Source of the DNA: Hydrolagus colliei
Lineage: Eukaryota
DNA length: 64,000 nt
Assembly: GCA_035084275.1 (NCBI GenBank)
Contig: CM068769.1
Coordinates: 1,488,001 to 1,552,000, forward strand
Direction of reading: 5' to 3'
This document shows, in pieces, positions 1 to 43,421 of this stretch (positions are counted from its first letter, which is position 1; the number at the start of each line of letters is the position of its first letter). A program made the translations under genes and the position numbers. Below the pieces are notes generated by a model that was not told where the DNA came from, ran no database searches, and saw only the letters and a program-made list of their open reading frames with translations.

Positions 1-3000
1 GCGGTAAAACTGAAGGCCCGTCCTCTGATGGTGGGGCGGTTCGGGCGGGGGTTTTAGAGCAGGTCAGGTACTGCTGAACGGAGGGTCCGAGTGGGCTTGT
101 AGGGGGAGAGTAGATTGGTTAAGTAGGGCGGGGCAAGGCCATGTAAGGCATTGAAGGTGAGGACGAGGATCTTGAATTCGATCCTCTGGAGGATGGGGAG
201 CCAGGGGAGACGGGCTATTGTGGGGGTTATATGGTCGCGAAAGCGGGTGCGGGATAATACACGGGCTGCAGAGATTTGGATAACGTGCAGCCTATGAATG
301 GAGGAGCTGGGGAGGCCGACGAAGAGAGCGTTTCCGTAGTCCAGCCTTGAGGAAGTGTATTTGTGCACGAGTGTTTCGGTAGCGTGGGGGGTAAGATAAT
401 TGCGGAGCCTGGCAATATTGCGAAGGTGGAAATAAGCGGTGCCGGTCAAGGCACGGATGTGGGGGAGGAAGGAGAATTTTTGGTCGAACGTGATGCCGAG
501 GTTCCTGACTGGCTTTATGAGGTGGACAGTACAGCCTTGGATGTTGATGCTGGCAGCGCCCAATGTGCGGAGGCGCTGGCTTGTGCCAATCAGGAGGGCC
601 ACGGTCTTACTCACGTTCAATTGCAGGAAGTTTTCCCTCGTCCAGGACTCGATGTCGGACAGACACACTGTCAGAAAATCGATGGCCTGGGGGTTGAGGT
701 ATGAGGCAGAAAGCTACAACTGGGTGTCGTCCGCATACATGTGGAAATTTACCCCATGTTTACAGATGGCATCGCCCAGAGGGAGCGTATAAATGGTGAA
801 AAGGAGGCGGCCGAGGACAGAGCCCTGAGAGACGCCGTGAGAAACTGTGCGGAGGTTTGAGGAAAAACACATTGGAGTTCAACGTGTAAACGGTGGGTGA
901 AATAAAAATGGAACAATTCAAGGACTGTGCCTTGAAGGTTGAGGTGGGAGGAAAGACGTTGGAGGAGGATGGTGTGATCGACTGCGTCGAACGCAGCAGA
1001 TAGGTCAAGGAGGACGAGGAGGCAAAGGGAGCCTGGTCACAGGCGGTTAGGATATCATTTGTAACCTTAACTAGGGCAGTTTCTGTACTGTGAATAGGGC
1101 GGAAACCTGATTGGAGGGGTTCAAGGAGTGAGTGAGTTGAAAGGAAAGAGCGGAGCTGGGAGGCAACCACTCTTTCAAGGACCTTGGATAAAAACGGGAG
1201 GTGGGAAATGGGTCGATAGCTTGATGGGTGCGACGCATCAAGGGAGGGTTTCTTAAGGATAGGTGTGATGGTGGCGGTTTTAAGGGTGATAGGGACGGTA
1301 CCTGAGGAGAGGGAAATGCTGATGATGTCAGAAATGAACGTGTCCAAAACGTGGAGCTGGGTGTGGAGTCGGGGGGGGGGGGGTGGGTGGATATGGGTTC
1401 CACTGAGCATGTGGTGGGTTTCATGGAGGTGATTATTTTTGTGATTAAAGACGGGTTAGTGGGGTTGAAAGTATGAAATGGGGTGTGGGTGGGGGTTGAT
1501 GAAACGGATGGAGGTGCGGAGCTGGAGGAGAGGTCGGGGGAGGAATCCGCGGAGCGGAGTTTCTCTATTTTGTACTCGAGGAAGTCCAACATCTCCTCAC
1601 AAAGTTCGTTTGAGGAGAGAATCTGCGAAGCGAGACGGGGGGGCGGAGGAGCTGGTTGGTGGTGGCGACAAGGAGGCGGTGGTTGTCCTTCGCTTCCAGG
1701 ATTATCGTGGAATATAAAGCTGATTTGGCGGTGGCTAGGTCGGAGCGGTAAAAGTTTATGCGGTCCAGCCAGATTTGCCGGTGGACCGTGAGGCCAGATT
1801 TGAGCCAGGTGAGTTCAGCTGCTCTCACTTGGCTTTTGAGGGAGCGGAGGTTAGTTGTGTACCAGGTTGATTATCGGGAGTGGGAGACGGTTCTGGAGGT
1901 GAGGGGGGGCAGGTGTCGAGGCTAGTGGAGAGGGTGTTATGGAGGGCGGTGGTGGCGGATGATGGGTCGGTGCATAAAGAGTGCCACTTTGGGAGGAGGT
2001 CGGAGGTTTCGTGGGCAGATTTGAAAGTTTGAGGGGGAATCTTCTTCCAGGGATGGTAGAAGATGGTGGTCGGTTTGGAAGTGGAGGGGGGATGGATAGA
2101 GGTGTTGAAAGAAATGAAAAAATGGTCTGAAATGGCCTTGTCGATGATGGTGACTCCAGAGACGTTGAGGCCTCGGGTGATCACCAGATCGAGCGGATGT
2201 TCGTGGGCGCGGGTGGCACTGTTAATGTGAAGGGAGAAGTTGAAAGACCAAAGTAAAGAGGAGAATTCAGAGGAAATGGGGTCAGGAGGGAGTGAAATGG
2301 AGGTTGACGTCGCCAAGAATGATGAGGCGATCAGAGGAAACGCAAAGGGAGGTTAAAAGTGAAGAGAAATCTGAAATGAAAGTGGGGGAGGGTTTGGGGG
2401 GGCCATGAACTAATAGGATTTTGAAGGAATTGTGGGAGGAGTGAGAGAGGGTGAACTGTTCTAAAGAGGGGAAAAAACCGGAGGAGTAGAGGGATAGGGC
2501 GAGGGATGAATTTGAAATGAGGGCCACACCACCGCCTCGACGGTTGGGTCGAGGGGCATGGACGAATTTGTAATTGGGTGGTGTTGCATCTACGAGTGCG
2601 AAAGTGTCGCCTAGGGTAATCCCGGTCTCCGTCAGGGCCATGATGTCAACGTTCTCATCAAGAATGTGATCGTTGATGGCCAGGGTCTTGTTGCAGACAG
2701 AGCGGACATTTTGGAGGCCGATGCGGAAAAAGCAGTTGGCCGAGGGTTGAGAGGGGGGGGCTGGGATGGTCGGCGGGGAGGGTGGGGATCTGGATAAGGG
2801 AGGAGAGGTTGACCGCCCGGGTTTGTATCCGGTGGGACTGGCGGTGATGGTGGGGGACAGGGCACGTGGGGTGGCTGCTGTTGGACAGCCAGCGCCGAAT
2901 GCCACGGTGAGCCCAACGGAGAACTCCAAAACTGGAACAAAGGGAAGTGGTGGGAGGGTCGAGCAGGGACAGTAGTCGACGAGGGCGAAGAGAAAGAAGG

Positions 3001-3660
3001 GTAGAGAAGGAATAACGGAGAGGGGGGATTGGGGTGAAAGAATTGAGGAGGGGAGGGAAGCTCGGGTCATGGCGGCAGCCATATTGCGCAAGCGGGAGAT
3101 CAGGAGGGAGGGATCAATGGGGCGGCATCATCCAAAGCGATGTGAGGCCGTGACAGGGGGATGCAGGGGCGTTGCGGTCTGGAGCCTGGCCGGGACTGAG
3201 GCCGAAGCTGGGGCTGTGGGTTTCAGGGCCAGTTGCCGGGGATGCGTGGGCCCGGGCCATGGGTCGACGGCTCAAGGCTGGAGCTGGGAACGGGGTAGAG
3301 AATCTCGGGGCTGTATGTCTTGAAGCCGGTCTTGGAGCCGGGGATGAGGGTCACGGAGCTGTTGGTCGCGGGGCTGGAGCCGGTGGCTGTGGGTCCTGGG
3401 GCTGTGAGTCTCGGTGCTGGAGCCGGTGCTGCGGTTCCTGGGGCTGTGGCTGGAGTCGGTGCTGTGGGTCCTGATGCTGGGGCTGTGGCTGGGGCCGGGG
3501 CTGTGGGTCTCGGTGCTGGAGCCAGGTCGAGCAATATCTGCTATGTGGACTTCTTAATCTCATGCTGCACAGAGACAGCTGTGAGTCTCGGGGGACAGAA
3601 GGGACACCCAGAGGACAGCCTAGACATGTCATCTATGTGTCCCTCTCGCCGCCATTTTTA
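1..3660 (-). mobile_element. L2-clade LINE, decayed, 3' end runs off window start (copy 1)
   Basis: Frameshifted ORF pieces give an APE endonuclease (GLQNVRSVCNK, ILGDVNLH, HEHPLDLVITRG, ISDHFFISF) and RT ([49 protein letters not shown]). The 5' end begins AAAATGGCGGCG (YY1-like) with a Pro/Ala-rich repetitive 5' region at 3170-3560. Confidence 0.85.
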
Positions 3661-4465
3661 AAAGCTGCAGCATCATGCCAGTTTGCCAAATAATGTACCA
3701 ATGGTCACTGTAGCCTGAGAAGTTTATTGACTCTGAATTTCTCCGGTACAAGAAAAATAAATCATATGTCATCCATAATACTGCGAAATTTACCGATATC
3801 GCAAACAGTAAAATAATGACTTTCCTTTGGTTCTTCATCTCTGGATCACTGTCTCCCTCACCTCTATTCCTGTCCCCATCACTGTGTCCCCGCAATCTCA
3901 TGCGGGCTCGACTGGCCACTAGGATGTGCCTGACAGTCAGGGCGTTGAACAGCAAAATCCCATCGAATGGGAGCATTTGGGTTAAAACAAGTTCGAGGAG
4001 GTCAAACACATTCCATTGGATAAACGAGTAAACGCTTGCTTTGGTCACGCAAATCCACGATATGCTGTTAGATATGAACTCTGGTTCATAGACAAAGTAC
4101 CAGGGAATGTTTACCCCCAATGAAGAACACACTGAGCCCCGCTATCACTGCTGCAGCTGTTTGTTCCGTGCAATATTTAGTTTTCAGTTGTTGGCAGCAG
4201 ATGGCGACATAACGGTCGAAGGCTAAAGCCACAGTTAGCCAGACAGAGATTGCCGATGCTGCAGTACTCAGTGCCTCTAGCAACGAGCAAACATAGGTGA
4301 TGTTCACGAATGAATATGGGAAGTAGAAAGGAACAATGCGATAGAAAATCACCACAAAAATTACCATAATCAGATCAGGCACTGACATGGCCAGCAGAGA
4401 GTGGGAGACACATTTTGAAAGACCGCACCTCCCTCGGGACAGGATCAGAATGGCTACCATGTTAG
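3661..4465 (-). pseudogene. GPR139-like class A GPCR, main coding exon, frameshifted and truncated in TM7 (copy 1)
   Basis: Acceptor tctctgcag|CTAACATG at 4465; NMVAILILSRGRCGLSK, TVALAFDRYVAICC, DPEMKNQRK motifs typical of the chondrichthyan GPR139-like expansion. An extra C in the run at 4114-4118 shifts the frame relative to copy 2. Ends at GMMLQLL, fused to the L2 5' end. Confidence 0.8.
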
Positions 4466-6649
4466 CTGCAGAGAGAGTGAACGTAAAATGACCAGTTATA
4501 ATAATCAATTTCTACAGTTCATTTTCTGCTGGTAGAGTAATATTTTCTGCTGCGCTTTCTGTTGGGTACTTTTCGCTTCTCTCACATGAATTCACTATTT
4601 TTGCGACATCAAAGTGCGATGGAGAGAAGTCTGCCTCGCTGCCCATCGCCAGGAGTCACATTCGCACGCACATGCAGAGGCAGAAAAAGATGCACAGACA
4701 GCGGGAAATGCACTGACATGAAGACAGGGAAAAAGAGCAAGAAACAAATACGGAACACGCAGGACGATGTAGAGAAAAGTAAATTCAGGCCGAAATGCAG
4801 AAATACACTTTTATGTATATCGGCAGAAAGACCTCTACCTGTTCTGAGAGAGAGAGACCGTCACAGACAAAGGGGGAATGGGAGATACACAGATACAACT
4901 ACACAGAGAGTTAAACACAGACACAATGAGTTTGGTACAGAGATACAGCGAGTCAGATAGATGCACTCAGACTGACAGATAGAGGGTTATTCAAAGACAG
5001 AGGGAGAGAATCACTGATACAAAGAGAAATGCACAGAGACAGATTCATATAGATATATATGCACACAGGCAGAGAGAGCGACACATCGCCTAAATACACG
5101 TACACAAACATACAGATGAATTAGACAGATATGCACACAGATAGAGATAAAATTACATACAAGGTGAGAAAGATTCACCGACAAGTAGAGACAATTCCAC
5201 ACACAGGGAATGGTAGTAAATATTTGAAGCAGATGTGGATGTAGATCGATACATAGATAGACACACACACGCAACTAGAGAATGAGAACAGAGAGGGGGG
5301 GGGGGGGGGGGTGGGGGAGGGACGCAGAAACAAACAGAAGAACAGCCACATGCAGAGAGATATACAAAGAAGTACAGAATGAGACAGGGAGACCTACATA
5401 GGTCTTGTGGGGTCAGTTTAGAACGAGACACATGTAAAAACGTTTCACCTGCACAGCAGTAAACAAACCCAACTAAGACTTCCATGAATCTCAATTTTAC
5501 ATGTAAATCCCATAGATAGATTGTTGGAAAATAATGCAGAGAGAAGCTATCTCTACATATGTCTGCTGATCTGTTTGTCCATGCGTATCTCTTCCTCTCT
5601 CCCCCCCTCTCTCTCTCCATAGGCCGTGGTGTTCATGTCCGTATTTCAATATATAGCTCTATTTCGGTATCACTGCAAATCTCCCTCTCACTGCCTGTGG
5701 GCAATATGCTTTACTTTCATATTCTTATGGATAGCGATATGATTCCTTAAGACTCAAGCCCCCCAGCTGACCAAACTAAATCTATATGAACAATTATGTG
5801 TGGAGCAAAGAAACTTGCCTTATGTTTCCCACTACTTCATAATGAAACCCGGTCTTCCGGCTTGACAGTTCAATGCTGTAGTAATGGAGAGAGGGGAATA
5901 CGGATAGCGGAAAGACAGCTCACAAAATACGTGGAGAAGGGGATTGATATCAATGGAAAGAGAGAGGGACACGCATACATAGAGAAATAGGTACTCACAG
6001 TCACATATAGAGCGAGAGAGATAGACACAGATCAATACATGAAGAGACAGCGAGATGTAAACAGGTAAAAATGTTGACGTACAATGTGCAATAAACACGG
6101 TCAGAGAGTATGTAGCACGCAGTTTGGGACAGTGCCGCAGGACTCTGGATCCTCAGCAGCCTGGGGAGGGAGTAGTTGGGAAAACCGTCCAACAGAGTAT
6201 TTGCATTGCCAAGCCGGAATGTAATGAAGACATGAATGAGGCTATCAGCGGCTTTGAAGTGGTGCGTTATTGGCGGAGTCAGGCAATGTGGGTTAGATGA
6301 GGAAAGTAAGTGGGTGGCATTGCTTGGATGTGACGGAGGCAAGACACGTGAGTGTCGAACAAGACAACAAGGTATCTGAGTGGCTTGATGAGGTCAAGTG
6401 AGCAACGATGGAGGTTGACACTACCAGCGACGGATGCTTCAAGACGCTGGCGAGAGCTAATCAACAGTGAATGTATAGAAATAGCTGGAGAATAACAGAG
6501 AGATGAAGGGATGCAATGCGACAGCTAGAGTGCTAACCACGCAGAAAGAAAAGGACAGATAGACACTGATAGAAATGGACACAAAGAGGCAAAATTACAC
6601 AGATATACCAAGAAAGAGAAAGATGCAAACAAACAGAGATAATAATATT

Positions 6650-6935
6650 AAATCTTGCTTTTCATGTAGCGCTTTTTGCGTCTTCCAGAAGTCTCAAAAT
6701 GCATCACAGAATAGAGTGAGTATAAGTGAATTGACTGTCTATTTGTGAGCGAAATGTAGCAAGTCAGTGTCACACAAGCAGTGATGGAGTGAAATCAACA
6801 TTTTTTGTCAGGCATTATTAATAGGCGAGTAAAGTAAGGAAACCTGCCCAAGATTTCACACTAACCTGCCAGGAATTGAAGACAGATCTCTTGCTATTAA
6901 GTCTAGTGCTCTAACAACTGAGCTACGGTAGAAGG
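6650..6935 (-). mobile_element. tRNA-derived SINE (Deu-type core, L2-like tail)
   Basis: tRNA-like head (GTAGCTCAGTTGTTAGAGCAC...), degenerate core, tail AAAAGCGCTACATGAAAAGCAAG; duplicated at ~62860-63140. Confidence 0.6.
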
Positions 6936-9029
6936 GGAGGTACAGGGGATGGCGATTTTCAAAGTATTGCAGAGACAGCGGCAGACACACAGAGGCACAG
7001 CTTGAGATACTAGACAGACGGAAGCAGATCGGGAAAGACACACACAACGCGTACTTAAGGAGAAAAAGTTAAGCACGTATGAATGAATAGAGGGCGAGAG
7101 AGCCGCACACGGTCAGAGAGAGGGAGTTACAGACAGCGGAGGAAGAAAGTGCATGATATATGCAGACATACGGTGATACACGAGCAAAGAGACTGAGAGG
7201 TAAACACACAACAAGAGAATGATACACACAGACACAGAGAATAAATACATACCAACAGAGAGATTCACACACACAAAGTGAAAGCAACACACACTGTATT
7301 TAGATGTGTAGAGATACAGATACAACATTAGATACATAGAAATATGTACACGCTGACGGAGAATAATGGACAAACAGAAAGAGAGAAAAAGAGAGGCAGA
7401 GACGTGCTCACAGACAGTCAGAGTGCTACACATAGTGTGAGACAGGGGGTTAACGGGACAGCAAGAGATAAGCAGAGAAATTGAGAGAAAGGGATGGAGA
7501 TATACATAAAAAACATGAGTAAAAACAACAGCTTACATGTATGTAGCGCCTTTCGCACCGGGTAGCTAACACAGAGAGAGACAAATACAGAATCAGATCC
7601 AGCACACTGCGAGAAAAGAAACAGAGAGAGCGCGCAACAGCTATAGAAACTCAAACAGATATAAACCCAGCCACACAGGGAGAAAAAGTAAGACAAAAGA
7701 GTAGGATACAGAAACAAAGGCATTCAGATAGATTCAGAATCATGCACAGCCAGAGGGATCCGGAGAGTTACAGAGACACAAAGAGACAGAGAGAGCACAA
7801 ATATGCATAATAAGAATCCTGGTATTTTTAAGTAGCACTCTTCGAGTCTTGTAGGCTTCTCATGCGCTCGACCGAATCTACACTGACGTGAATTGACTGT
7901 AAATTTGTGCAGGAAATACAGCAGCCAATGGCGCATAAATTTGTTATCCATTGTAGTGATCAATGTGATATTAGTTTTTTCTTTCTTGGGGGATTAATAA
8001 CAGGTGTATGACGTAAGGTAACTTGTAAGGATGCTATCACACTGCCAGGAAATGAAATTCCGTCTATCGACTCCACAAATTATTTCGCTCTTAATTTATC
8101 AATCAAACAATGAATCAAAACTGAAATCTACATAGCGTCGTTCACGTCGAAAGGACGTCCAAGGCGCTGTAGTGTCAGGAGTGGACAAGGGAAGTGGGGA
8201 GACGCCGTGGCAGGATGAAGAAGAGTAGGAAAATTGACTATATTTCTGGGATCAAAGCGGAAGACAGATTGCGCAGAGCAGTGTCGCACAATCAGCCATG
8301 GCAGTGGGATTAGGAGAGAAAGGGGGGAAAGATGGCAAGGGGAGGTGGCGGGGGAGACAGCGTAGGGGGAAGCAGAGCAGGAAAGCCGACGTTTTGTAGG
8401 CGAAACCCCACCCCATCGCAGCAGACAAATTGTGCTCAGCAGCGTCCCACAAACGGTCACTGAAATTGGGACAGGGAGGAAATGTGGAAAAGAGGGTATA
8501 GGGGGAGAGGGATGTCAACGGGGCAGATTGAAGGTAAGATGGGGTGGGGTAAAGTAAGAGAGGAAGAGCGGGAAGCAACGAGGTTAAGTGGAAACTAAAA
8601 CGGGTTAAAATACACAATTGCCTGATTCAGAGGGACAGTTGTAAACCGGTCGAGCTGCAAGCCTTAATGCATATTAATAAATAAATTAACTTTGGTAAAA
8701 CACTTGCCGGGAAAACCAAATGCAGCGAGAATCGAGTGGTAAATGTATTTCTATTCTGTGAATAATCGGAGTTGTCATCTTCAAATCGGAAATTATTACG
8801 TCTTCTCTCGGCAGAGGCAGCTGCTGACGGCTGAACGATGATGCTAGAAAGTCTCAAACGGATTCTTATATAAACCAACAGTGATCGCTTTGTTGAGCAA
8901 TGTTACCACGGGGTCGTCGATGAATTTGAGCCGCATGCAAAACAGTTACTCAACGTGTGTAATGTCATTAACCTCAAGGATTTAATTTTGGGGGGCAGCC
9001 CATTGTTTCATCAAAGCTGAATTATTGCG

Positions 9030-10160: not shown

Positions 10161-11609
10161 GCCCCTCCTCCTCGCCACCTCCCTGGCCACCTTCACGTAT
10201 CTAACCATGGCTCTCCTCTTCGTACCCACAAAGGTTGCAATGCGCAACTGGCTGTTGAGTTTCATCAACAAACATACAGTTAGTTAATTTATGTTAATTA
10301 TTCTGTTATTATTTTTGCATCATTACTGAGTGACGACGTTATTATAAATGGACCAAAAACAAGTATTACGATAAGAACGCCATTTGAGAAAAAATATACA
10401 TGAATCAATACTGAATAAAACTGAATCCCTTTGCACAACAACACAATCTCTCTAGAAAGTAATCTGTTTTTTAGTTTAATGAACATATAATTTCATAGGT
10501 TGAAATGGCTAATTTTATCAGCGTGTTTTTCTTGGCGAGATTATTATCAGGTGTGTGTGTATATTTACGTGTATATATCTCTGTGTGTGCTTGCGTTCGT
10601 GGAATAGGAAAGCTTGTCCAAGGTTCCACCCTTAACTGCCTGGATTCGAACACATTTCTCACGCTTGTGAAGCGAGTGCTCTAACCACTGAGATACAGGA
10701 TCTCCGCAGTTTGTGGAACAGATCCATATGAAGTGCTTTTGTGACACTCGAGTATGTGTTATATCAATGGTAAAGAGCATTATTATTTCTATGACTTTCC
10801 CTCTTTCCATACATGAATGTATCCACCACTTTGGTTTGCAGTTGAGATATTGTCACATATTTCCACTGCGAGCGACAGCAGCAAAGTCAGTAATTGTCAA
10901 ATATGTCATTAGTCATTACTAATATATGTGCAGCGATTAAAGCATTTGTCTGCCCGTGGGTGTTTTAATATCAGTGGTATAATGTGACGGTAACACAGTG
11001 TGTGAAAGAATAATAATAACAAATCTTATTTATCAAAAGTATAAAATGTAAGGTTTATTAGTTTTAGTTTCACTCTTTCCTTACATGAACCACACTATCA
11101 CTACTTCTGCTTCTGGTTGGAAATCAGTCACGAGTTTCCTCTGAGACACAGCAGCAGAGTCAACAAATTGTCAAACAGGTCAACAGTCATTCCAGGCCTC
11201 TGAGCTGAGATTAAACCTTTTCTCTCCTATTAGCAGGTTATTGTAAAGTGGGGGCAGGCTGACAGCAGTCTGATTCTAACATGGCTTGTGTGATCGCATG
11301 TTTACTGTGGCTGTGCTGGATGCAGCCACAGTGACAGTCAACCACTTCAATGGACTTCCCGACGTGAGAGGCGCTCTGCACACGTCATTGTGTTGTTCTT
11401 GATGTTGGGTTCGATACCAGGACAGTGCAACACATTGGGCAGATATCCGTACTCCACAGGCCTCAGTTTAAAATACATCCATTAGGAAAACTGTTCTATT
11501 AAAATAGCGGTGTGCTATTCCTTGGGTATTTTTACTTTTATAAAAACTAAATATTACTTTACAACATTCGCCTTATTTACTTCATAAGAGTTTATTCCAA
11601 ATACAGTGA

Positions 11610-12939: not shown

Positions 12940-12978
12940 GGTTATTGTACGAGGCTTCCTATGATGTGTATCACTGTG
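12940..12978 (-). other. 23-bp-spacer RSS of supporting V-delta
   Basis: Minus strand CACAGTG (12978-12972), 23-nt spacer, ACAATAACC (12948-12940). Confidence 0.9.
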
Positions 12979-13271
12979 GTGCAGACTGACTGCACAGTGA
13001 TACATAGCGGAGTCTGGCTGCTGCAGGCTGGCGATGGATAAATAGCTGATTTTCTTGGCAGTGTCAAGAGAAGCAGAAATATGATCTCCAGTGGGGTTTC
13101 CTCCCTCTCCTGTAGTGTTTCTGTGGAGAAGGTATTTCGGTGCCTCACCAAGGGACTGACGGTACCAGGAGACAATGAACTTCTGTCCGCAGAATCCTGA
13201 GTATTGGCATTGTAAATCCACTCTCTCTCCAGCAATAGACTTTGTTTCAGGCGGTGACTGGTGTATCGATC
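12979..13271 (-). CDS. STCRDV: Leaderless supporting TCR-delta V segment of a NAR-TCR cassette
   Basis: Phase-1 acceptor ccacgtag|GA; open frame GSIHQSPPETKSIAGERVDLQCQYSGFCGQKFIVSWYRQ...DSAMYHCAVSLH with Cys23, Trp41, Cys104 and an extra CDR1 Cys (CQYSGFC). No leader exon found between it and the upstream J. Confidence 0.88.
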
Positions 13272-14671
13272 CTACGTGGAGGGAATCACAGGATAGTGAG
13301 CATTTCAATGGCATAGCGTTGTACAGCAATTAAGGAGGACATTAGGACAATTGTTTATTTGCCAGCTGTTTGGGGCAATTGTCCAACTCATCCCATTTCC
13401 ATTGTTGCCCCACATTCTTGACACATTTTGCTTCTGCATTACTCCACCGGTCCATTTCCACTTTAAAATGGATAGTTTAACAGGCTTATACAAGAATATC
13501 AGGCAGCGGATTGCAGATTATCATAACTTTGAAATTTATAACAAATTCTCTTTTTCTCCCGTTTGCTTCTTTTTTAAAAAAAACTTTAAAACACATGTCC
13601 TTTGATTACTGACCCACTGGCCAATGGAAACAGTTTCTATGCTCCCCTTTTATCAGATACTATTTTAACATTCATTGCACTCATGAAAAGTTGATCTCTT
13701 TGTATGTGTCAATTGCTTCTTTGCTGTAACCATTCTATTAAATCGTCTTTCAATAATAACTTTAATATCCTTCTTATCCTGTCAATAAAAGACACTTTAG
13801 ATACACTTTTCACCTAAACCATACAGTTACTCTAATAACAATACTTGCATTTGTTTTTGCGCTTTTCATGTCCTCTAGCAGCCTCAAAAACCTTCAAAGA
13901 ATATACTGTAAAGTGAATTGACTATATGTGAGTGGACGAAGCGCGGCACCCGAACAATAATAACACTATTATTACTGTTTTAATATAGGCGATTTTCCCA
14001 ATTTATCGACGTCACAAAGCGCTTCACAGAATATACTGTAAATTGGAATGATTCTATATTTGTGGGACAAACGCGGCAGCGAATTGCGCACAGCAGTGTT
14101 CCTCACAAACAGTCGTGGATTGGATTGACCAATGTAGATTATTGTGGGAATTTTTCACGGATTATTATTAGAAGTGTGGAGAAAGGTAACTTGCCCAAGG
14201 TTTCGCCCTATTCTTCCTGGATTCGAACACGGGTCTCACGCTTGTAAGTGATTGCGATATCCACTGAGCTATAATCCACAATGAAATAGTTTAACTGATT
14301 CTATACGGGTTTGCTGTTGTAGATTACCCCCACTGAAGACCTGGTTGTCTTTGATCATGGGAATGTTTAGCAGAGAATCAGATGTCGGTGTACACAGTTA
14401 ACTCCGTTGAATTAAAGTTGAGTAAAATGGAATTCCCCTCTGTAAATGTCGTGACATTAACATCGCTGCTGGAGGAGGTGAATTAAGTCTCTGGCTTGTT
14501 TCCAAAATCAGTTTTGTCTCAGTCTGTTAGCCTCTAAATGCAGTTTCATTTTTGCCAGAAGAAAACTGCTTTCCATAAAAAGTGTTAAATAATTGCTTAA
14601 ATATGTTTGTTTCTTTGTTTGTGCATTTGTTTATTTATTTGTTTCCTTCTTTGATTCTTTCCTTGTTTCTA

Positions 14672-14904
14672 TCCTTGTGTCTTTCTTTGTGTCTTTCCTT
14701 GTGTCTTTACTCGTGTCTTTCCTCGTGTCTTTCCTCGTGTCTTTCCTCGTGTCTTTCCTCGTGCCTTTCCTCGTGCCTTTCCTCGTGCCTTTCCTCGTGC
14801 CTTTCCTCGTGTCTTTCCTCGTTTCTTTCCTCGTTTCTTTCCTTGTTCGTTTCCTCGTTTCTTTCCTCGTGCCTTTCCTCGTGTCTTTCCTCGTTTCTTT
14901 CCTT
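14672..14904. repeat. 12-bp tandem repeat (TTTCCTCGTGTC-like) abutting an assembly gap
   Basis: About 19 imperfect copies directly before the N run. Confidence 0.9.
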
Positions 14905-15147
14905 NNNNNNNNNNNNNNNNNNNNNNNNNNNNNNNNNNNNNNNNNNNNNNNNNNNNNNNNNNNNNNNNNNNNNNNNNNNNNNNNNNNNNNNNNNNNNNNN
15001 NNNNNNNNNNNNNNNNNNNNNNNNNNNNNNNNNNNNNNNNNNNNNNNNNNNNNNNNNNNNNNNNNNNNNNNNNNNNNNNNNNNNNNNNNNNNNNNNNNNN
15101 NNNNNNNNNNNNNNNNNNNNNNNNNNNNNNNNNNNNNNNNNNNNNNN
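14905..15147. other. Assembly gap (243 N)
   Basis: Run of N in the sequence. Confidence 1.
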
Positions 15148-15809
15148 TCCAATCTATCTCTCCCGCTTTCCCCCTCATCTCTCTCTAATTTACCTGAGAT
15201 GCTTCCTACACGTGTATTTGCTTACATATTGGCAACATACCGTGTTTTCGTGTTAATGAATAGTTAGTTGCTTGTTTCTGTAGAATATGATATAGTTCAG
15301 TTGGAACACTCAACTTCCATACAGAGGGGAAATTGGTGAACATTTCACGTTATCGCTTGAGACAATCCTTGGTTTGAATAGAACAATTTAAAGCATGTTT
15401 CATATTGGAGACATTTCATTGAGAGTTGACTTCTCGATGGAATCGCGGCAGAGAGTGTCTATAATATGCCACTGGAACTCACATATCCTGCGTCTATCAT
15501 TTGTCTGAATTTACAGTTAAATTATGTATTTAGGCATGTTCCTTTGTAAACCATCTCCAGAAAAAGTGCAATGGCATAAAACCAAAAATGGAGTAGATGC
15601 AGTTAATCAGAGGAAAAAGCCTATTAGCGGAAGCTGTCTAGTCTTTTAAAATCACAAGCATATCTTTTATTTTTCAAACGGCGGTCAAGGGGAATGTTGG
15701 CATGACACATTTGAACATAACTAGGCAATTTGTTAAAATAAGCAGTGCATTTTAGAAATTCAAGTAACTCATGTTTCGTTTTATTTCAGTAGAATTTATT
15801 ATCACTTAG

Positions 15810-15865
15810 TTTTTGTTACTGTGACATTGGTTCCTGATCCATCTAAGGTATATTCCTCCCAAGGA
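15810..15865 (-). CDS. NAR-TCR J segment (IgNAR-like), non-canonical splice donor
   Basis: Reads PWEEYTLDGSGTNVTVTK+A (DGSGT resembles IgNAR-type DG.GT). Phase-1 end followed by CTAAGT rather than GTAAGT. 5' RSS: heptamer CACAGTA (15866-72 on +), 23-nt spacer, GCAAAATAT (15896-15904). Confidence 0.8.
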
Positions 15866-16219
15866 CACAGTAACCCAGCGCTCGTAATACAAGGCGCAAA
15901 ATATATTCTACCTGATTATGATTGAATACTGCCACGAAGTAAATGTAAATGATAACAAGTTAGTTGTTAGTTTCTACATTTCTACCACTTTTTCATCACA
16001 ATACATGCATCGTGTCCAAATTTGGTTTGATTTCAATGTAATTTCCACCCATCATGAACAAATTGCCTCGCCCAGAAAACATATAACAGTAAATAATTCT
16101 AGAGTTGTCTGCTTCAAATGGCTAATCCAGAAAGCAAACTTCTGACAATTACAGCGCAATAAAACATGGCACAGCAATTAGTGTTGATCTGCAATGTAAT
16201 TCCATGTAAACAGCCGCAC

Positions 16220-16292
16220 GGTATTTGTGCTCATGGATTCCAATGTGGCTTTCCAAAAAGCCAGCACAGTATTTGTTGTCAACACAAATATA
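16220..16292 (-). other. NAR-TCR D segment (16248-16264) flanked by two 12-bp-spacer RSS
   Basis: D = CTGGCTTTTTGGAAAGC (17 nt). 5' RSS: CACAGTA (16265-71 on +), 12 nt, ACAAATATA (16284-92). 3' RSS on minus: CACATTG (16247-41), 12 nt, ACAAATACC (16228-20). Confidence 0.88.
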
Positions 16293-16617
16293 GTATTTTG
16301 CAAAAACAGTGTAACACTATCTGGTCAAGTACAATTTATCAATAAATAATATCACGTGTACAAATATTTTGAAGATATTCCTATTCAGATTTGATATGTC
16401 GTCTATTCGATATACATAAACTGCGATATATGCCAATTGCACTCACATTCAACGTCTTTTAACACTACCTACATTTTCCTAAGTGTTCACCAATAATGCT
16501 TGTTAATCGAAGAGAGTGTTATGAAACACAATTCACATCTCAACACACTGGAAAATGTGCATAGAATTCATTGACAAAGTCACATTGACTGTGTGTTGTC
16601 TTTGAATTGACGAAGAA

Positions 16618-16655
16618 GCTTTTTGTATTGTTGGAAGCCTGGATGCAGCATTGTG
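16618..16655 (-). other. RSS of NAR-TCR V (22-nt spacer, 23-type)
   Basis: CACAATG (16655-49), 22 nt, ACAAAAAGC (16626-18). Confidence 0.85.
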
Positions 16656-17351
16656 TTGTACCACAGATATTGAGATACACATCTGTAGGTAGCGCTGTCT
16701 GCTACTTGCAAATCATTAATTTCCAGCGTGGATGTCTTTGTTCCCACTTTGATAACATCAAACCGTCTTTCGCGAGGGATGGACATCCAATCTCCACCAT
16801 TTGGAAACTGCCTTTGAAATGCCAATCTAATGGATCTGTAGTTCCCACGATTCCCTTCTGCAAACACGCAGTTGATGGTCAAAGAATCACATCCTTCTTT
16901 GGTAACAGAAGTTGGTGTCTGTGTTAGGGTCTGACTGAAAACATCTGAAACATACACAACATGACGTCAGGTTAATACAGGCACAACTTTGACCTGTACC
17001 ATTAGCAGCAAATCCTGATGCTTGGCATGAGTTGAATTGATTTCAATTAATACAATAATAATATAATTATAATATCATGTTTAATTAATAAAATACAAGC
17101 AGAACAGTTTAATCGATAGCAATCGGCTGCTACTTTTCGCCCGCAAAATAAAAAAAAGTACGGTCACTTCGACATACAATATACACTGTGAAGCGCTTTA
17201 AGACGTTTCATCGATGTGACAAGCCTCTGTATCAAAGCAAGCAATAATGTAAATTATTGTAAGGCACAGGGTGTTCACTCGTGCCGTGTAATTGGAACAA
17301 AAACTCACGTTGTAAGAAGTGGAAGGCGATGGAGACAGAGATGAGATGCAT
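16656..17351 (-). CDS. NTCRV: NAR-TCR V gene (IgNAR-like V domain): leader exon 17309-17351, V exon 16656-16944
   Basis: Leader MHLISVSIAFHFLQ+C|GTGAGT. V exon after tttcag|: VFSQTLTQTPTSVTKEGCDSLTINCVF...TSTLEINDLQVADSATYRCVSQYLWY. Matches the VNAR pattern (QTP..TKE.GESLTINCV...L.INDL.V.DS.TYRC). FR2-CDR2 is short (45 residues between the position-41 residue and Cys104 vs 59 in the V at 22865). Extra FR1 Cys. Confidence 0.88.
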
Positions 17352-20931: not shown

Positions 20932-21285
20932 AGTTTCTGTTCGAGCCCTGCAGTGTAATCAACCACTGTGGTGAGACTGAAGGCACGGTGATACACTGCG
21001 CACTCAGATACTAGCAGCTCAGAGATGGAAAAACTGGTGAAAGAACTAGATTCCTGCAGCTGAGCAGCGCAACGTTTTCGAAATCCTGTTCGTTTCACCA
21101 GATCGCCATCACCAGAATATATCTCCGGACTGTAAACTCTGGGTGTTTGTCTGGGTAATGTCTGTACCAGAAGAGATAGTAATTGCTTGCAGTAGTGGTG
21201 TGGGTACACACAATATTGACAGCTTCTCCTTCTTTCGTAACCACCGTGGCAGCTTTCTGACTGACGTAATCAGCGTCACAGACTT
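20932..21285 (-). pseudogene. TCR alpha/delta V pseudogene (family C), V exon 20971-21285 with intact RSS
   Basis: ttccag|AA...DYVSQKAATVVTKEGEAVNIVCTHTTTASNYYLFWYRH. 2-nt insertion near 21117-21122 shifts the frame; Cys104->Arg (VYHRAFSL). RSS CACAGTG (20970-64), 23 nt, ACAGAAACT. Leader not located. Confidence 0.85.
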
Positions 21286-21816
21286 CTGGAATAAACCAGG
21301 AAAAGCACGGCGAAATATTATTTACCAAATTCACAGTTTATTCGTCAGCAGTGGAACAATAGTTAGCAATGCGTTTTGCACAGCGTGTTATAGCATTGTT
21401 GAGACTCATTAATGCGTTGTCCAGAATATACAATCAAGTGATAAACTGTAGATTTTGTCGCCAGAACATGTCAGCCAGTTTTGCACATCAATGCCTCACA
21501 AAGACTTGTGGTATGAGTTACTAAACTATTATTGAAACATACATAAGGCATTATTACCTTCGGAAAATATATCTGTCTGTCTGGTAAACAAAGGTTAAAA
21601 TCGATAAATAAATTTTATTTTGAATATCAAGGCAAGGGTTCAAACCGGTGATAAATCCACGTTCAAAATCCTGAATGTAGGATCTTGAATGCTCCTCACA
21701 TTTAACGACCTCCACAACCTCGCACCGACATGTGTTACGTCATATCCTTTCACAAACCTGAACTCCCGATCAATCCGCTCAGCAGGCTCTGGCCTGCTCC
21801 ACCTACTCCAACCAAG

Positions 21817-26600: not shown

Positions 26601-27534
26601 ATTCGCTTTACGGTGTGTACTATGTGAAGTGATTCCAGACGTCGGTAAGATGTGAAACGCGCTACATCAAATGAAAGGATTATTCTTACATTATTATAAC
26701 TTTGTCTCACATTCCATTCTACACAGATGGAGCTTGACTTGTTGAGTTCAAGCGATGTCAGTATTTGTTTCCGTTTAAATTGTGTTTCACTCACAAAACA
26801 TTAAACTCAACACAATATGTCTTTGCGTATAATCAACATCCATTGGGATCACTGGCTTGAAATTATTTTGCCAAAAGAGCAAAGCCATTGACAAAGTGAG
26901 ACATCTCAATAAAGCTGCACATGATACAGTGTGATATCTAAAAGAGGGACATCTACAAGTGCTGGACAAGATATAGTGTGATGTGTACTGACAGTTTCTG
27001 TCTGCCAACTCGCTGTTAACTCACTTTACAGTATATTCACTGACACGTTGAGACGTCCAGCAGCATCAACAACACACTTACAGTTGTACGGCGTCTTGGA
27101 TATCAGGAGAACGTCCCAAGATGCTGCCTAGTTACTGCTAAGGACCCGAGCTGAGGAGAGGTGGCGATGTGGGGAGCTGGGGGGTTGTGGCCGAGGAGTT
27201 CAGATGGATCCATCGAAGAGGAGAGTCTTGGGGCGAGACTCGAGGAAGGCCAGGGAGATATGATAATGCTCCCATAACCAAAATTAGAGATGATTATTGC
27301 TAATCTTTCTTCCACTCTTCTCCTATGTATTCTATCAGTTGTTCGCCTGTGGTTGGAAATGTTGTCACATGTTTCCTCTGAGAGACACAGCAACAAATGT
27401 AGGATACGTCAAATAGTTCAACCGTCAGCAATGACAGCTTTGCTGTGATTAAACCCATTAACTCCCTTTGCAGGTTTATGTTCGGTGGTGTAGAGTGTTT
27501 TTGTACGAGTCACAGGCTGGTTCGCATCACTGTG

Positions 27535-28609
27535 TGGACAGAGAGCACAGTAATACACAGCGCTGTCAGACAGCTCCAGCTGGGAGATAGTTAAACTACT
27601 GAGTTTTGTCGAGGTCTGGAGTTCCACAGAGAATCGTTCATCAATAAAATCTGCTCTGTATGCACTCACACTGGAATGCTTCGTGAGTATATACTGCGGT
27701 TGATATCCCAGCAGTTCTCGATACCATTGCAAATAATATCTGCTGAGAGATGTGTCATACTGACATTCCATGGTTACACTTCCTCCTTCTTTCTCGGTCA
27801 CTGGAGCCGCCTTCTGTGTCACAGAGTCCCCTTGGGCCAGGCCTGAAATACACAAACACGCAGTCATGTAGATCAAGATTTCGCGCTAGCTTCACAACCG
27901 AGAAGACCTGGGTTAGATTCCCGGTCAGGACACAATAAATCGTCAGGTACGTTTCCCAACAAGCATGCGTTTGTTTGCGTAGCATCAACTTGAAACCCAG
28001 TTGTTCGTCGATCGGCGGATTGAGTTTACCAAGGGTAATGATCCGTTTGAAAATACAGAAATTATTTAGTCATTCAATCAAAGACTGTTTTTGCGACACT
28101 TCTGTGAGATCATGGCTTTCCCGTTTCTTCCACAGATTACATTACTCTTTACACAATATTCTGTGAAGTGACTCTAGTATCTCGAACTGATGCTTGACCC
28201 AATGCGTCGATTGTTAGTGTTGTTATGAACCCTTTGGCAAGATTTCTTAATCCACACGCCTACTAATAATCCCTCAACAAATACACAGTAATAAAATTGG
28301 TCATTTCAATCCATGACTGTTTGTGGGACACTGCTTGCGCAATTGGCTGCCGCGTTTCGCCCACATATATACAGTCAATTCACTTTGCAGTTTATTCTTC
28401 GAATCGCTTTGGGACGTTGATAATATGTGAAAAGCGATTCATAAAATGCAAGGATTAGTATTATTAATAGTATTATCATAATGAAGAGAATATATTCACG
28501 TAAACAAATCAACGGTTTTGAAAATTGATTAAAATGACCACTGTTACACCATATTACCTATTAAAATGGCAACCAGAGGCAGACGCCCATTGAATCTCCA
28601 TATTGTCAT
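27535..28609 (-). CDS. TCR alpha/delta V gene, apparently functional: V exon 27535-27842, probable leader 28558-28609
   Basis: tttcag|GC CTG: LAQGDSVTQKAAPVTEKEGGSVTMECQYDTSLSRYYLQWYRE...DSAVYYCALC. RSS CACAGTG (27534-28), 23 nt, ACAAAAACA. Leader candidate MTIWRFNGRLPLVAILI+G|GTAATA (52 nt, phase 1). Confidence 0.85.
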
Positions 28610-33415: not shown

Positions 33416-35388
33416 CTGTAATAGAAAATGAAGAGTAGGTCAATATATTATCCACTACTTGCCTCAATTATTTTTCCGTAGTTTGGGAAACTGACCCCAC
33501 TTGAACGGTTCTATGAATAAATCATTGATTAAAAATGAAATAATTATTAATGTTGAATTATATGTAGCGTATTTTTACGAATTTGTATCGTCTGAATTTG
33601 CAGCACAGAATATGCTGTCTAGTGAATTCCAATGTATTATTGAGTAGGAAACACGGCAGCCAATTTTTTACAGCAATCAACCGTGGATTGAGTATTCAAT
33701 TATTTTTCAAAATTGTTGAAGGGTTGATTGCTCTAGGAAATCACAGCTGCCAATGGACTCAAAGTATTCGTGTGGACAATTTATTATTAATAATCTTTTT
33801 ATACAGCGAATAAAGGAACCGTATTCCTACTTACCGCTGGTAATCTTGCCTGCAGTAACCCCCCCGCCCCCCCCCCCCACCCCCCACCCCCCCCTACCCA
33901 ATAATCAAAATCAGTTTCCCTCGCTTGTGAGACGAGGACATTTATCACTCGACTACATTTGTCCATTAATTGTTCAAGTTTAGTTGGCAATCCGCTAGGA
34001 ACAGTATCTCAGCCAAACAGGACCTCATCTGAAATAAAGGTTGCCAGCATTAGACAGACAGCAAACATCCTCATTGTTGGTCTCCAGCCTCTGTGGTTAT
34101 GTGTGAGGCCTCAGCTGGATGATACCGCACCATGCCTTGTCGACATTGGTAGAGCCCATCCACTCACGTCATCTCATTGACTTCTCACACACTTTGTACA
34201 CGAACAATGACCTAATGCTTTCACACAGCGCCAGCGGCTGGAGAGGTGAATCCTTACACTCTGATCCAGATTACAATGCAAAGCATAGCCTCAACGTGCA
34301 GGCTGGCCATGTTAGTAATATCATCACAATCCTTCCAGTTCTGATAGCGCCTTTTTTTTGTGGTCCAGACATCACAAAATGCAGTGGGGTCAGTTACCTC
34401 TATGTTGTGAGCGAATTGCCAGACAATTGATGCACAGCAGTGTCTGGTGAACAATCATGGATCCAGCGTTGTCAACCAAATGGCCAGATTATCGCCATTG
34501 TGCTTCTTGAAGGAATTACTTCATGTGGAAATGGGTGTCCACCTAACGCTAGATAAACAAACTTCTGTAGGGGACGGAAACTTGCCCAACAATTTCCACT
34601 TCTGGAAATCGAACCCAGGATACTCAATTGCGGGTCAAGTGCTTTTTTAAACTACTATTGTGTAATAGGTTTTGCTTTGCTTGTTTCCCTCATGGGATCA
34701 TCGATCTGATTGTTTGACTGTTAGATCATAGGTCAATGTGATGTTCACATCGTGTCTTTGTCTCCTATCCAACAGGAAAGCGCTGCTGCCAACTCTGTAG
34801 AGATACAAAATCCATTCCATTGGACACTATTCGTTTGCGTAGTAGTTTCTCACTGTTACCCAGGCTGTTGTTGTTGTACAGTATTGTACAGCGTTAAAGG
34901 AATATTAGCATATTGTCGACAACAAAATCGAATACATTTGTTTTACCGAAGTGAGATCCATCAAATGGCAGCTGCTGTTTGGGAGACAAAATGAGTAATA
35001 AAAATGGACAGATAAATTATTTTTTGAAAGCAATAGGTTAGTCCTGCTTGAGAAATACTGGTACATTTGTGACTGGATCAGATTATGAGCAAGAATGGTG
35101 ATTGCCAGAGCATTGAACTGTTTCTTCAAGTCGTGGATCTACGTGTCCATGTCAGAAACAAGTGTGAATATTTTTGAATATTGTCCCAGTGAACTGATAT
35201 GCAAAGCGACCACCAAAGTATGTTCCTTGCTGTTAATACAAAGGCGTGTGTATTAACGAACGGATGTTTTGTTCTGCCATGACTGAACCCAGGTGCTCTC
35301 ACATGTAAGGCAACTGCTGTTACCACTGAGATTCAGGCCTCAGTCTGTGAGTTTGTGTATGGCAGAAACGCTGATTTGTGCCTTTGTG

Positions 35389-36075
35389 GGGCTCAGTGCA
35401 CAGTAATACACAGCAGAATCTGGAAGTCTCACTTGGGATATAATTAATGGCACGGTTCTCTCCGCTTTATCCACCTTCGTTGAAAAACGTTCTTTTGGAA
35501 AATCTGCATGACGATGGTCTTTGCTTCTGGAGTGTATCTGAACGATATATCCTGGAATTTGTTTGGGATAGAGACGACACCATATCAGGTAAGGATTGCT
35601 GTCGCTTGTCGTAAAATTACGCTGCAGATGCACATCTTCGCCTTCGTCCATTGCTACAGTTGATTGGGGCTGTGTTACACTATCTCCTACACACTGCCCT
35701 GGAAACCAGACACACTTGAACGTTCAGCAAAATAAGAACAATAATAAAATTTGAACACGTGGATGTGGCGTCTCACTTCTTCTAGACCACTCAAACTCGC
35801 GGTTCAGTAAAAACAACAATGAGTGGGGGGTAAGTAAACTCGCCTCACGTATCACCTTGTTTGACCCGTGAATCGAACCCACATAATCACGCTTGTGAGG
35901 CGAATACTCTAACTTTTTACGTACAGGTCTCGACAAATCCATGAGTAATGACACGTGTTGGTTACTTTGTACAAGAAAAGATGGGGTGGATAATATATCT
36001 TGTCAGCAACATTCTATAATTCGTGTGTGTCTTACCTGACAAGGTATTGAAGACTGATACCATGTACATTGCCAT
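35389..36075 (-). pseudogene. TCR V (family A), open frame but Cys23 lost and weak RSS: V exon 35389-35698, leader 36036-36075
   Basis: GQCVGDSVTQPQST...VHLQRNF (C23R)...YLIWCRLYP...DSAVYYCALSP. Heptamer CACAAAG, 23 nt, ACACAAACT. Leader MAMYMVSVFNTLS+G|GTAAG. Confidence 0.7.
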
Positions 36076-41710: not shown

Positions 41711-43123
41711 GGCTAGATAGTACAATTTTAAATGGTGTAAAGGAACAGAGAGACATGGGGATTTGTGTTAGTGACTCGTTGAAGGTGGCAGGACAGGTAG
41801 ACAAGGCTGTTAAGAAGGCATATGGGATACTAGGCTTTATAAATAGGTGTATAGAGTACAAAAGTCAGGAAGTGCTGACTAACCTCTATAGGACTTTGGT
41901 GAGGCCTCAGCTGGAATACTGTGTTCAATTCTGGTCACCACACTACAGAAAGGATGCGAAGGCATTGGAAAGGGTACAACGAAGATTTACTAGGATGGTG
42001 CCAGGATTGAGGGACTTCAGCTATGAGGAGAGGCTAGATAGGCTAGGGTTATTCTCTCTGGAGCAGAGAAGATTGAGGGGAGACCTAATAGAGGTTTATT
42101 AGATCATGAGGGGTTTCGGCAGGGCAAATAGAGAAAAACTATTTCCACTCGTGGTTGAATCTGTGACTCGTGGTCACAGATTTAAAATAGTTTCAATGCG
42201 CAGTAGAGGGGAGCTGAGGTGAAATTTTTTCACTCAGCGAGTTGTTCGAATCTGGAATGCGTTGCCTGAAAAGGTGGTGGAGGCTGATTCGATAACAACT
42301 TTTAAAAGGGAATTAGATCTTTATTTAGGGAGAACGGGTCTATTAGGCTATGGGGAGCGGGCAGGGCAGTGAGATTGAATCGCTCTTTTCAAAGATCCGG
42401 CACAGACTAGATGGGCCGAATGGCCTCCTTTTGTGCCGTAAAATTCTATGATTCTATGATTCTATGAACTGTCCATATATGTATTTATTTAGCTATAAAA
42501 GTTACTTCCATGCATTATTATGTCAAGTCATTGAAGCGTCTCATAGGTCGACATAGATGTTACTCCCGAGGGCAGACACAGAATATTTGGCAAACTCAGT
42601 ATTTAATTTGTGTAACACAATGTCCCACGATCACATGTGAAGTGACCGCACAATTGTGCTGGTACAATGTGTGCCAAAGCACCAGTAGAAACTCTGTTCA
42701 CCCTGGAGCAAATCATTATTGCTTCTTGCTTCAAGTCACGTGAAACTCCCTTTCGTGTCTCCATAGATTGACAGCTTCTCCGACACTGCAACCACCGCCA
42801 GGACAAGCGACCCACTAACTGGCTAACAGACAGGTTACAATGTACTGCTGTAACCTGCTGTAAACGTGTATTTTTATGCCGAGTATGGGACCATGCATAA
42901 GGATTTGGGACTCGGACTGAGAATCCAACTCAGGTCCACACGGTTGCAAGGTGAATACTCAATCCACTGTCATGCTGGGCTCCTCAGACCCTGCACAACA
43001 TCCCCTCTGTTTACTCTTGTAATCGCATAAAATTACTGAAAGCGCCAAGTTCAATGTGTGAGAGGAACTCATGACTATCTAGTGAGTGTTTGTACGAGGA
43101 CTCTGCCCTTCTGTAACAGTGTG

Positions 43124-43421
43124 GGCTCCACGGCACAGAGATACACGGCGCTGTCACTCACAACCACCCTGAGAATCTGCAAGTTAATTAGTTTCTTCCC
43201 CTTGTTCACCTCGGCAGTGAAACGGTCAGCAATTCCAATAGCTTTATCTACCTTTCCCGAGGCATATATCCTGAGGACATACTGAAGAGCTCCATCGGGA
43301 TATTGCCTGTAGCAGAAGATAATGTCTATGCTTGAAACGTTCATTCTGATTGTCACGTTTTGTCCTTCAAGTTCTGTTATCTCAGGGGGGGTCTGGTATA
43401 TGACACGACTCCCATTGGCCA
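43124..43421 (-). pseudogene. TCR V segment, open frame with Cys23->Met and Trp41->Cys; leader not found
   Basis: ttttccag|TG: ANGSRVIYQTPPEITELEGQNVTIRMNVSSIDIIFCYRQYP...DSAVYLCAVEP. RSS CACACTG (43123-17), 23 nt, ACAAACACT. Confidence 0.7.

Follow-up and report, generated by a model that had tools for sequence, protein, structure and literature searches.

Our analyses suggest that the window (the whole 64-kb stretch of Hydrolagus colliei DNA analysed here) carries a germline NAR-TCR cassette of the TCR alpha/delta V region, and that this copy has most likely become a pseudogene by recent inactivation, a reading to which we assign a probability of about 0.6. NAR-TCR is the classic example of a T-cell receptor that bears a single V domain of antibody type, and is central to ideas about the origin of IgNAR. 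The first-pass annotation of this DNA had described a leader, a VNAR-like V, a D and a J, followed about 2.5 kb further on by a leaderless V exon with a splice acceptor and its own 23-RSS. The minus strand indeed carries the whole set, with every part where it had been placed (in the list and below, a slash marks an exon-intron boundary):

17351-17309, minus strand: leader exon of the NAR-type V; ATG at 17351, MHLISVSIAFHFLQ plus 1 nt (phase 1), donor AAC/GTGAGT
16944-16656, minus strand: V exon of NAR-TcR type; phase-1 acceptor, cag/, at 16946-16945
16655-16618, minus strand: RSS of the NAR V; CACAATG, 22-bp spacer, ACAAAAAGC
16292-16265, minus strand: 5' RSS of the D; TATATTTGT, 12-bp spacer, TACTGTG
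16264-16248, minus strand: D coding segment of 17 nt, CTGGCTTTTTGGAAAGC
16247-16220, minus strand: 3' RSS of the D; CACATTG, 12-bp spacer, ACAAATACC
15904-15866, minus strand: RSS of the J; ATATTTTGC (weak nonamer, 5/9), 23-bp spacer, heptamer TACTGTG
15865-15810, minus strand: NAR J coding segment, LDGSGTNVTVTK, ending in EEYTLDGSGTNVTVTK plus 1 nt (phase 1 by homology)
15809-15802, minus strand: site where the conserved splice donor of the J is expected; CTAAGTGA in place of GTAAGTGA, the +1 G being changed to C
15809-13272, minus strand: intron between the J and the supporting V; 2538 nt as assembled, including an estimated gap
13271-12979, minus strand: leaderless supporting TCR-delta V exon; polypyrimidine tract, acceptor ending in ccctccacgtag/, phase 1
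12978-12940, minus strand: RSS of the supporting V; CACAGTG (7/7), 23-bp spacer, ACAATAACC (8/9)

The RSSs are laid out as V with 22, 12-D-12 and 23-J, which obeys the 12/23 rule, and all segments stand in deletional orientation. The cassette possesses its own D and J, both homologous to those of sharks, with RSSs that permit a separate V-D-J join; the coding segments (V, D, J and the second V) are all open, and the RSS heptamers are intact. Moreover, RSSs are far more abundant in the window than expected by chance: those scoring at least 14/16 number 10 in the 64 kb, against 0.03 expected from block shuffles, and all 10 lie on the minus strand, three of them belonging to the cassette. The cassette J is the single J-like segment in the 64-kb window, where we found neither a second J nor a C exon, and no second D was detected between the NAR V and the D at the thresholds used. 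An RSS-like pair at 11333-11283, considered as a D, proved to be an inverted repeat without a 5' nonamer and was not counted. A scan for promoter motifs, by presence alone, revealed CRE half-sites only and no Ig octamer. The two ends of the window form a direct duplication with 95% identity, and further copies of the cassette probably lie close by.

Phylogenetic analysis placed the V at 16.7 kb inside the NAR clade, which comprises the V domains of NAR-TCR and IgNAR (support 97/91), and apart from conventional TCR V, in agreement with the earlier reading of this exon as a VNAR. Its best 30 matches in PDB were all VNAR (top E=1.3e-11), and an exhaustive protein search recovered the NAR-TcRV of Callorhinchus milii together with the two-V chains of sharks. 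When the NAR V was the sole query, a word-indexed protein search gave no match, and a combined-query search gave matches to the supporting V family only. No identical protein was present in the database, as expected of either an unannotated paralogue or a holocephalan other than C. milii. For the GPR139-like gene the best match was again to C. milii, at 57%, and no exact match was obtained. The closest relatives of both V domains are predicted proteins of C. milii, with which the NAR V shares 48% identity; the leader, too, has a homologue there, namely that of NAR-TcRV, MSLLCVSISFLFLQ (P0010). The features reported as diagnostic of NAR-TcR are a leader, an a-b loop Cys and the lack of the WYRK Trp in V1, and a leaderless V2 with a CDR1 Cys (PMC1845163); all of them were found in the two V segments. 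The NAR V has the a-b loop Cys (KEGCDSL) and F in place of the absent FR2 Trp (RLAFQRQ), and keeps both canonical Cys (INC, YRC).

These residues also bear on the idea that the cassette is an IgNAR-type immunoglobulin cluster, or a remnant of one, rather than a TCR element, the probability of which we consider negligible. It is true that the V is NAR-like and that a V23, 12-D-12, 23-J layout is immunoglobulin-like, since IgNAR clusters share both the related V domain family and this RSS logic. However, IgNAR clusters keep the FR2 Trp, contain three D segments and are followed by constant exons. The IgNAR V domains that we compared (P0047, P0057, P0061 and P0063) carry W in FR2 and G at the a-b site, whereas the cassette V carries F and the NAR-TcR Cys; the cassette has one D, and its next exon is a TCR-type V. 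We detected no constant-region exons, of IgNAR or any other type, in the window (tblastn with an IgNAR constant region returned no hit with E under 2), hence the J is not followed by IgNAR constant exons here, as the first-pass interpretation had presupposed. Furthermore, the closest relatives come from C. milii, the genome of which is reported to be without IgNAR (PMC3964593).

The second V reads (R)SIHQSPPETK.., possesses the CDR1 Cys (SGFCGQ), WYRQ and YHC, and matches the Pfam V-set (E=5e-13). Its identity to C. milii V genes reaches 65-75%, the value of 75% referring to shorter local alignments and full-length identity extending up to 72%. In the tree it groups with the C. milii family (97/96), as sister to the supporting V of sharks (99/99). 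The claim that this V at 13 kb lacks its own leader stands for the 1.6 kb of upstream DNA as far as the run of 243 N, where no credible leader was found. An exon with an ATG in this region was rejected as a leader, being non-hydrophobic and having a poor donor 53 nt upstream. Unlike the supporting V, ordinary V segments of the window have their leader 0.1-0.6 kb upstream.

The N run (14905-15147), adjoined by an array of 12-bp tandem repeats (14604-14903), is located within the intron between the J and the second V, so that coding sequence is untouched and no reading frame extends across it. Given that this gap separates the two halves and that its length is an estimate, the NAR V-D-J could owe its position beside the leaderless V to a scaffolding artefact, the halves not forming one cassette. 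We regard this as highly unlikely, because three gap-free shark loci agree with the cassette in order, in orientation and in a spacing of 2.4-2.8 kb (the introns measure 2787, 2455 and 2418 nt, against 2538 nt here with the estimated gap), and because the second V comes from the very clade whose members accompany NAR V in those sharks and has the partner Cys. Tandem arrays such as the one beside the gap, moreover, commonly cause assemblies to break locally.

Among elasmobranchs, NAR-TcR of the nurse shark was described by Criscitiello et al. (2006), whose work is summarised in PMC1845163 and PMC12227049. We compared the cassette with genomic copies from Chiloscyllium plagiosum, Hemiscyllium ocellatum, Mustelus asterias and Heterodontus francisci. 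The shark copies share with it the order of leader, NAR V, D, J and leaderless delta V, the RSS spacers (22/23, 12/12, 22/23 and 23), the phase 1 of the J-to-V intron and both interdomain Cys. The spacing matches the Chiloscyllium, Hemiscyllium and Mustelus loci, with about 390 nt from V to D, about 380 nt from D to J and 2.4-2.8 kb from J to the second V. The likeness extends to the signals themselves: a 22/23-bp spacer follows the NAR V in shark loci L001-L003, the spacer of the D 5' RSS, GTTGACAACAAA, resembles GTTGACTTGAAA of loci L001 and L004, the nonamer of the D 3' RSS is identical in Chiloscyllium (L001), and that of the supporting V is also present at the Mustelus supporting V. The shark D segments are 16-17 nt long and occupy the same relative position. 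The whole unit has thus been kept across the chimaera-like and shark lineages in its RSS spacer lengths, D and spacer sequence, intron phase and segment spacing. The differences are that the NAR V of sharks is only about 40-45% identical to that of the cassette, that the J ends in VTVTK rather than in the VTVTA of sharks, that the J nonamer is weaker than those of the shark J RSSs (which have 22/23-bp spacers), and that the J donor is CT rather than GT. Hence, V trees, diagnostic residues and homology to the shark loci agree with the original assignment of a germline NAR-TCR cassette amid ordinary V-alpha/delta genes.

The suggestion that such a cassette might be unreported for this species carries little weight as a claim of novelty, since the NAR-TCR V and its leaderless associated delta V have already been described in the holocephalan C. 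milii (PMC1845163, PMC3964593). C. milii resembles the cassette in its homologous leader, in a J ending VTVTK, and in the RSS and flank 3' of the supporting V, which are the same when translated. The system is already known, the elephant shark included; the cassette is one more germline copy and leaves current understanding unchanged.

The cassette had also been called complete, which is right as regards every segment and RSS but not as regards the J splice donor, a defect that the first-pass annotation missed. The dinucleotide at +1 is CT (A/CTAAGTGA at 15810/15809; context ACAAAAA/CTAAGTGA), while all shark J segments compared have GT: the J donors of the four shark loci are G/GTAAGTGA, G/GTAAGTTA or G/GTAAAT at the homologous phase-1 position. 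In contrast to the cassette, C. milii protein models (P0040, P0036 and P0019) imply an intact GT donor in phase 1, as far as protein models can. The only GT dinucleotides nearby are at 15825 and 15819 (phase 0) and at 15805 (phase 2), the acceptor of the second V (tag/GA) is in phase 1, and an in-frame TGA follows the J at 15804-15802. A phase-matched J donor for the supporting-V acceptor is therefore absent as assembled. Since the J donor is CT and the other GTs are out of phase, no canonical splice joins the two halves in frame, which makes the copy a probable pseudogene or points to a base error. A phase-2 donor, AA/GTGATA, was rejected because a stop occurs after 8 codons in the V exon. 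A phase-0 donor, ACA/GTAACA (exon end at 15820), combined with a second acceptor that is also in phase 0, cag/TCA (start at 13257), could in principle yield an in-frame product. The donor defect concerns the function of this copy and leaves its ancestry untouched.

The pseudogene call hangs on a single base, and a base error or an allelic variant is possible in an assembly scaffolded with an N gap. It is also a point against this call that an old pseudogene with every ORF and RSS heptamer intact would be unusual. Alternatively, the copy may be wholly functional: the C at 15809 would then be a rare allele or an error of assembly or sequencing, with A/GTAAGTGA as the true donor. This is possible but doubtful. 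The open V, D, J and second V, the five RSSs, the good acceptor and the conserved spacing argue for it, as do the agreement of the donor with the shark consensus GTAAGTGA at 7/8 positions and the presence of at least one unresolved stretch in the assembly. Nevertheless, the sequence as given has C at this position, finished contigs seldom carry substitution errors away from repeats, and the J nonamer is degenerate (5/9 versus 7-8/9 in sharks). Several of the neighbouring V segments, moreover, are clearly dead, having stops, frameshifts or lost Cys. We thus favour recent inactivation of the copy.

If a gene with the dead J donor were nonetheless rearranged, read-through into TK and the TGA at 15804-15802 might produce a secreted single-domain NAR V of about 125 residues without the TCR part; an AATAAA is located just beyond this stop, at 15800-15795. 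Such a product would amount to an antibody-like V that circulates on its own account, free of the receptor, although the nearest sequenced relative of this lineage reportedly lacks IgNAR; we believe its existence to be very improbable.

The way in which a cassette of this type works is established for the family, and would apply here to an intact copy. RAG would assemble the NAR-type V with the D and J reserved for it, and the leaderless supporting delta V would separately join TCR-delta D and J segments located farther downstream, beyond the window. With transcription starting from the leader of the NAR V, splicing would connect the NAR J exon, in phase 1, with the acceptor of the supporting VDJ exon, and this exon in turn with C-delta. 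In the predicted delta chain the antibody-like V is outermost and unpaired, and a bridge between the a-b loop Cys and the CDR1 Cys tethers it. Other TCR chains, too, bear an additional or antibody-like V domain at the N terminus, namely TCR-mu of marsupials and monotremes and VH-delta of frogs, birds and platypus (PMC3457774). TCR-mu resembles NAR-TCR in having two V domains; however, both TCR-mu and VH-delta are convergent with it, as their V is VH-related rather than NAR and their locus and exon organisation differ.

A cassette that looks complete may thus be dead, and counts of functional NAR-TCR need splice-site checks. Gene predictors, for their part, annotate the parts of NAR-TCR wrongly: the public protein models of such genes either run on across RSSs or merge several V segments into one.

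All features of the NAR-TCR cassette lie on the minus strand, and the segment order, orientation, splice phases and the two partner cysteines are directly visible in the sequence, from which 12/23 compatibility can also be read (V22/23 to D12, D12 to J23). The parts are as follows (a slash marks a splice boundary):

ATG at 17351, 43 nt, minus: leader exon, encoding MHLISVSIAFHFLQ plus one base; donor GTGAGT
364 nt, minus: intron from leader to NAR V; acceptor cag/
16944-16656, minus: NAR V exon, encoding (H)VFSQTLTQTPTSVTKEGCDSLTINCVFAEGNRGNYRSIRLAFQRQFPNGGDWMSIPRERRFDVIKVGTKTSTLEINDLQVADSATYRCVSQYLWY
16655-16618, minus: NAR V recombination signal sequence (RSS), abutting the exon; CACAATG, 22-bp spacer, ACAAAAAGC
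16264-16248, minus: D, 17 nt, about 390 nt beyond the NAR V exon
D flanks, minus: 5' TATATTTGT-12-TACTGTG; 3' CACATTG-12-ACAAATACC
15865-15810, minus: J, ..EEYTLDGSGTNVTVTK, about 380 nt beyond D
Directly 5' of J, minus: J RSS; TACTGTG, 23-bp spacer, weak nonamer
13271-12979, minus: second V exon, 2538 nt 3' of J as assembled, opened by a polypyrimidine tract and tag/; product (x)SIHQSPPETKSIAGERVDLQCQYSGFCGQKFIVSWYRQ...SAMYHCAVSLH
12978-12940, minus: second V RSS, a near-consensus 23-RSS at the exon end

RSS matches at 14 or more of 16 positions numbered 10 in the window, against 0.03 expected from block shuffles; all ten are on the minus strand, each at a V end or at the cassette D. The cassette J is the sole J-like motif in the 64 kb. 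An inverted repeat at 11283-11333 (minus; CACTGTGGCTG...CAGCCACAGTA) resembles a D between heptamers; one side has a nonamer (ACACAAGCC) set off by an 11-bp spacer, the opposite side lacks one, and a gene segment is unlikely here.

The best 30 PDB matches of the first V were all VNAR structures (best E = 1.3e-11), the first non-NAR V appearing only at E of about 1e-6. In an exhaustive HMMER search, its best match was P0010, a predicted NAR-TcRV-type protein of Callorhinchus milii (48% identity), and the search also retrieved two-V proteins of Chiloscyllium, Mustelus, Hemiscyllium, Cetorhinus and Heterodontus with the layout L-NARV-J-deltaV(-Cdelta), as well as IgNAR heavy chains with weaker scores. 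Both V domains are nearest to C. milii proteins, with 0 identical proteins in the database, and the genome is of holocephalan type. A maximum-likelihood tree placed the first V within the NAR clade (97/91), apart from all conventional V of the window, and grouped the second V with a C. milii family bearing a CDR1 Cys (97/96), itself sister to the shark supporting V (99/99). Venkatesh et al. (PMC1845163) gave as diagnostic of NAR-TcR a first V that has a leader and a Cys in the a-b loop but lacks the WYRK Trp, and a leaderless second V with a Cys in CDR1; all of these features are present here. A scan for ATG...GT phase-1 exons gave the ordinary V segments plausible hydrophobic leaders, 0.1-0.6 kb away on their upstream side; the 1.6 kb preceding the second V yielded none. 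No IgNAR or TCR constant exon was found in the window. The NAR-TCR identity proposed in the first-pass annotation is upheld by the position of the first V in the tree, by the missing IgNAR constant exon and, as far as the sequence up to the gap shows, by the lack of a leader for the second V.

Three of the four shark loci compared (Chiloscyllium, Hemiscyllium and Mustelus) share the window layout. Their V and J each carry a 22/23-bp RSS and enclose one well-formed D that has a 12-bp RSS on each side; after a phase-1 intron of about 2.4-2.8 kb comes a leaderless V, which begins ag/AT TCC and is followed by a 23-RSS. Window and shark D segments are homologous: the 3' nonamer ACAAATACC of the window D recurs unchanged in Chiloscyllium, and the 5' spacer GTTGAC..AAA is shared as well. 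The D and J of the first-pass annotation are thereby confirmed by homology as well as by motif. In the fourth locus (Heterodontus francisci), a NAR-type V is fused straight to D/J in the genome (..YYCKAEYDGTGVDTRYVDGSGTVVTI) in two near-identical copies (3864-4190 and 4989-5310), which look like NAR-TCR VDJ exons joined in the germline, with one supporting V downstream; an orphan J lies at 3046.

The J-to-second-V intron holds an N run (14905-15147) adjoining a minisatellite (14604-14903; 12-bp unit TCTTTCCTCGTG, about 21-25 copies) that runs into the gap and probably caused it. No reading frame crosses the N run, hence the question of whether the parts are in frame across it does not arise. 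Continuity is not provable from sequence; the intron length, 2538 nt with the estimated gap versus 2787, 2455 and 2418 nt in the gap-free loci of Chiloscyllium, Hemiscyllium and Mustelus, and the second V, of the type partnering the NAR V in those sharks, fit the shark arrangement. By analogy with the family (PMC1845163, PMC5931798, PMC12227049), two independent RAG-mediated joins would occur, transcription would start from the NAR V leader, J would be spliced to the second V, and the latter would pair with a gamma chain, leaving the outer V to bind antigen by itself.

All shark J exons compared end one base past the codon after ..VTVT or ..VTIT, with donors N/GTAAGTGA, N/GTAAGTTA or N/GTAAAT. 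The window J ends ACA AAA A/CTAAGTGA, keeping 7 of 8 donor positions, with the invariant +1 G replaced by C at 15809. Among C. milii protein models, ..VTVTKSK-stop and ..VTVTKCE resemble read-through of A/GTAAGTGA and T/GTGAG, and ..VTVTKRKSYTVSQSPPEQ resembles a phase-1 splice; these agree, at the protein rather than the DNA level, with a GT donor at the shark J phase. No alternative GT dinucleotide near J has the +5 G, and none shares the phase of the acceptor (phase 1): two are in phase 0 (15825, 15819) and one is in phase 2 (15805). The phase-2 GT leads to a stop after eight codons, and the sole in-frame alternative combines a weak phase-0 donor with a second AG 14 nt within the second V exon. 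As assembled, the window copy therefore cannot yield a two-V chain by canonical splicing. The J nonamer is, moreover, weaker than those of shark J, and several ordinary V segments nearby look dead: the V at 46272-46661 has an in-frame stop, those at 21098-21337 and 47843-48079 are frameshifted or truncated, and those at 35343-35723 and 43078-43440 carry Arg where the first canonical Cys should be. Given the CT donor together with the weak nonamer and these neighbours, we read the cassette as a young pseudogene; the main alternative to this reading is a base error or an allele at 15809, the single changed donor position. An in-frame TGA lies two codons after J, followed one base later by AATAAA (minus 15795-15804); the TGA (15804-15802) falls within the conserved donor consensus GTAAGTGA, and AATAAA may be due to chance in AT-rich sequence.

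Earlier work has reported NAR-TCR from C. milii (PMC1845163, PMC3964593) and placed it on the maps of several elasmobranch genomes (PMC12227049); the window copy adds a base-level map and the donor defect. Automatic C. milii and shark gene models (P0001-P0008, P0010, P0015) continue past the RSS into the adjoining DNA (..CALSLHHSDTHHRKPRTITLITTK..) or merge several V into one "protein", under generic names (Ig-like domain-containing, uncharacterized, TCR alpha chain-like).

Elsewhere in the window, the V at 27421-27885 (minus) has its exon and a hydrophobic leader-like stretch (MIYMTACLCISGLAQG) in one unbroken ORF, its leader intron apparently absent, unlike in its neighbours. The window ends (1-7136 and 56198-63347) form a 7.2-kb direct duplication of 95% identity, containing LINE-like reverse-transcriptase ORFs and a GPR139-like receptor gene (best database match 57% identity), open in the copy at 59806-60693 and broken into two ORFs at 3629-4508. 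The duplicated ends suggest a tandem segmental repeat of about 56 kb; hence, sister NAR-TCR cassettes may occupy adjacent units.
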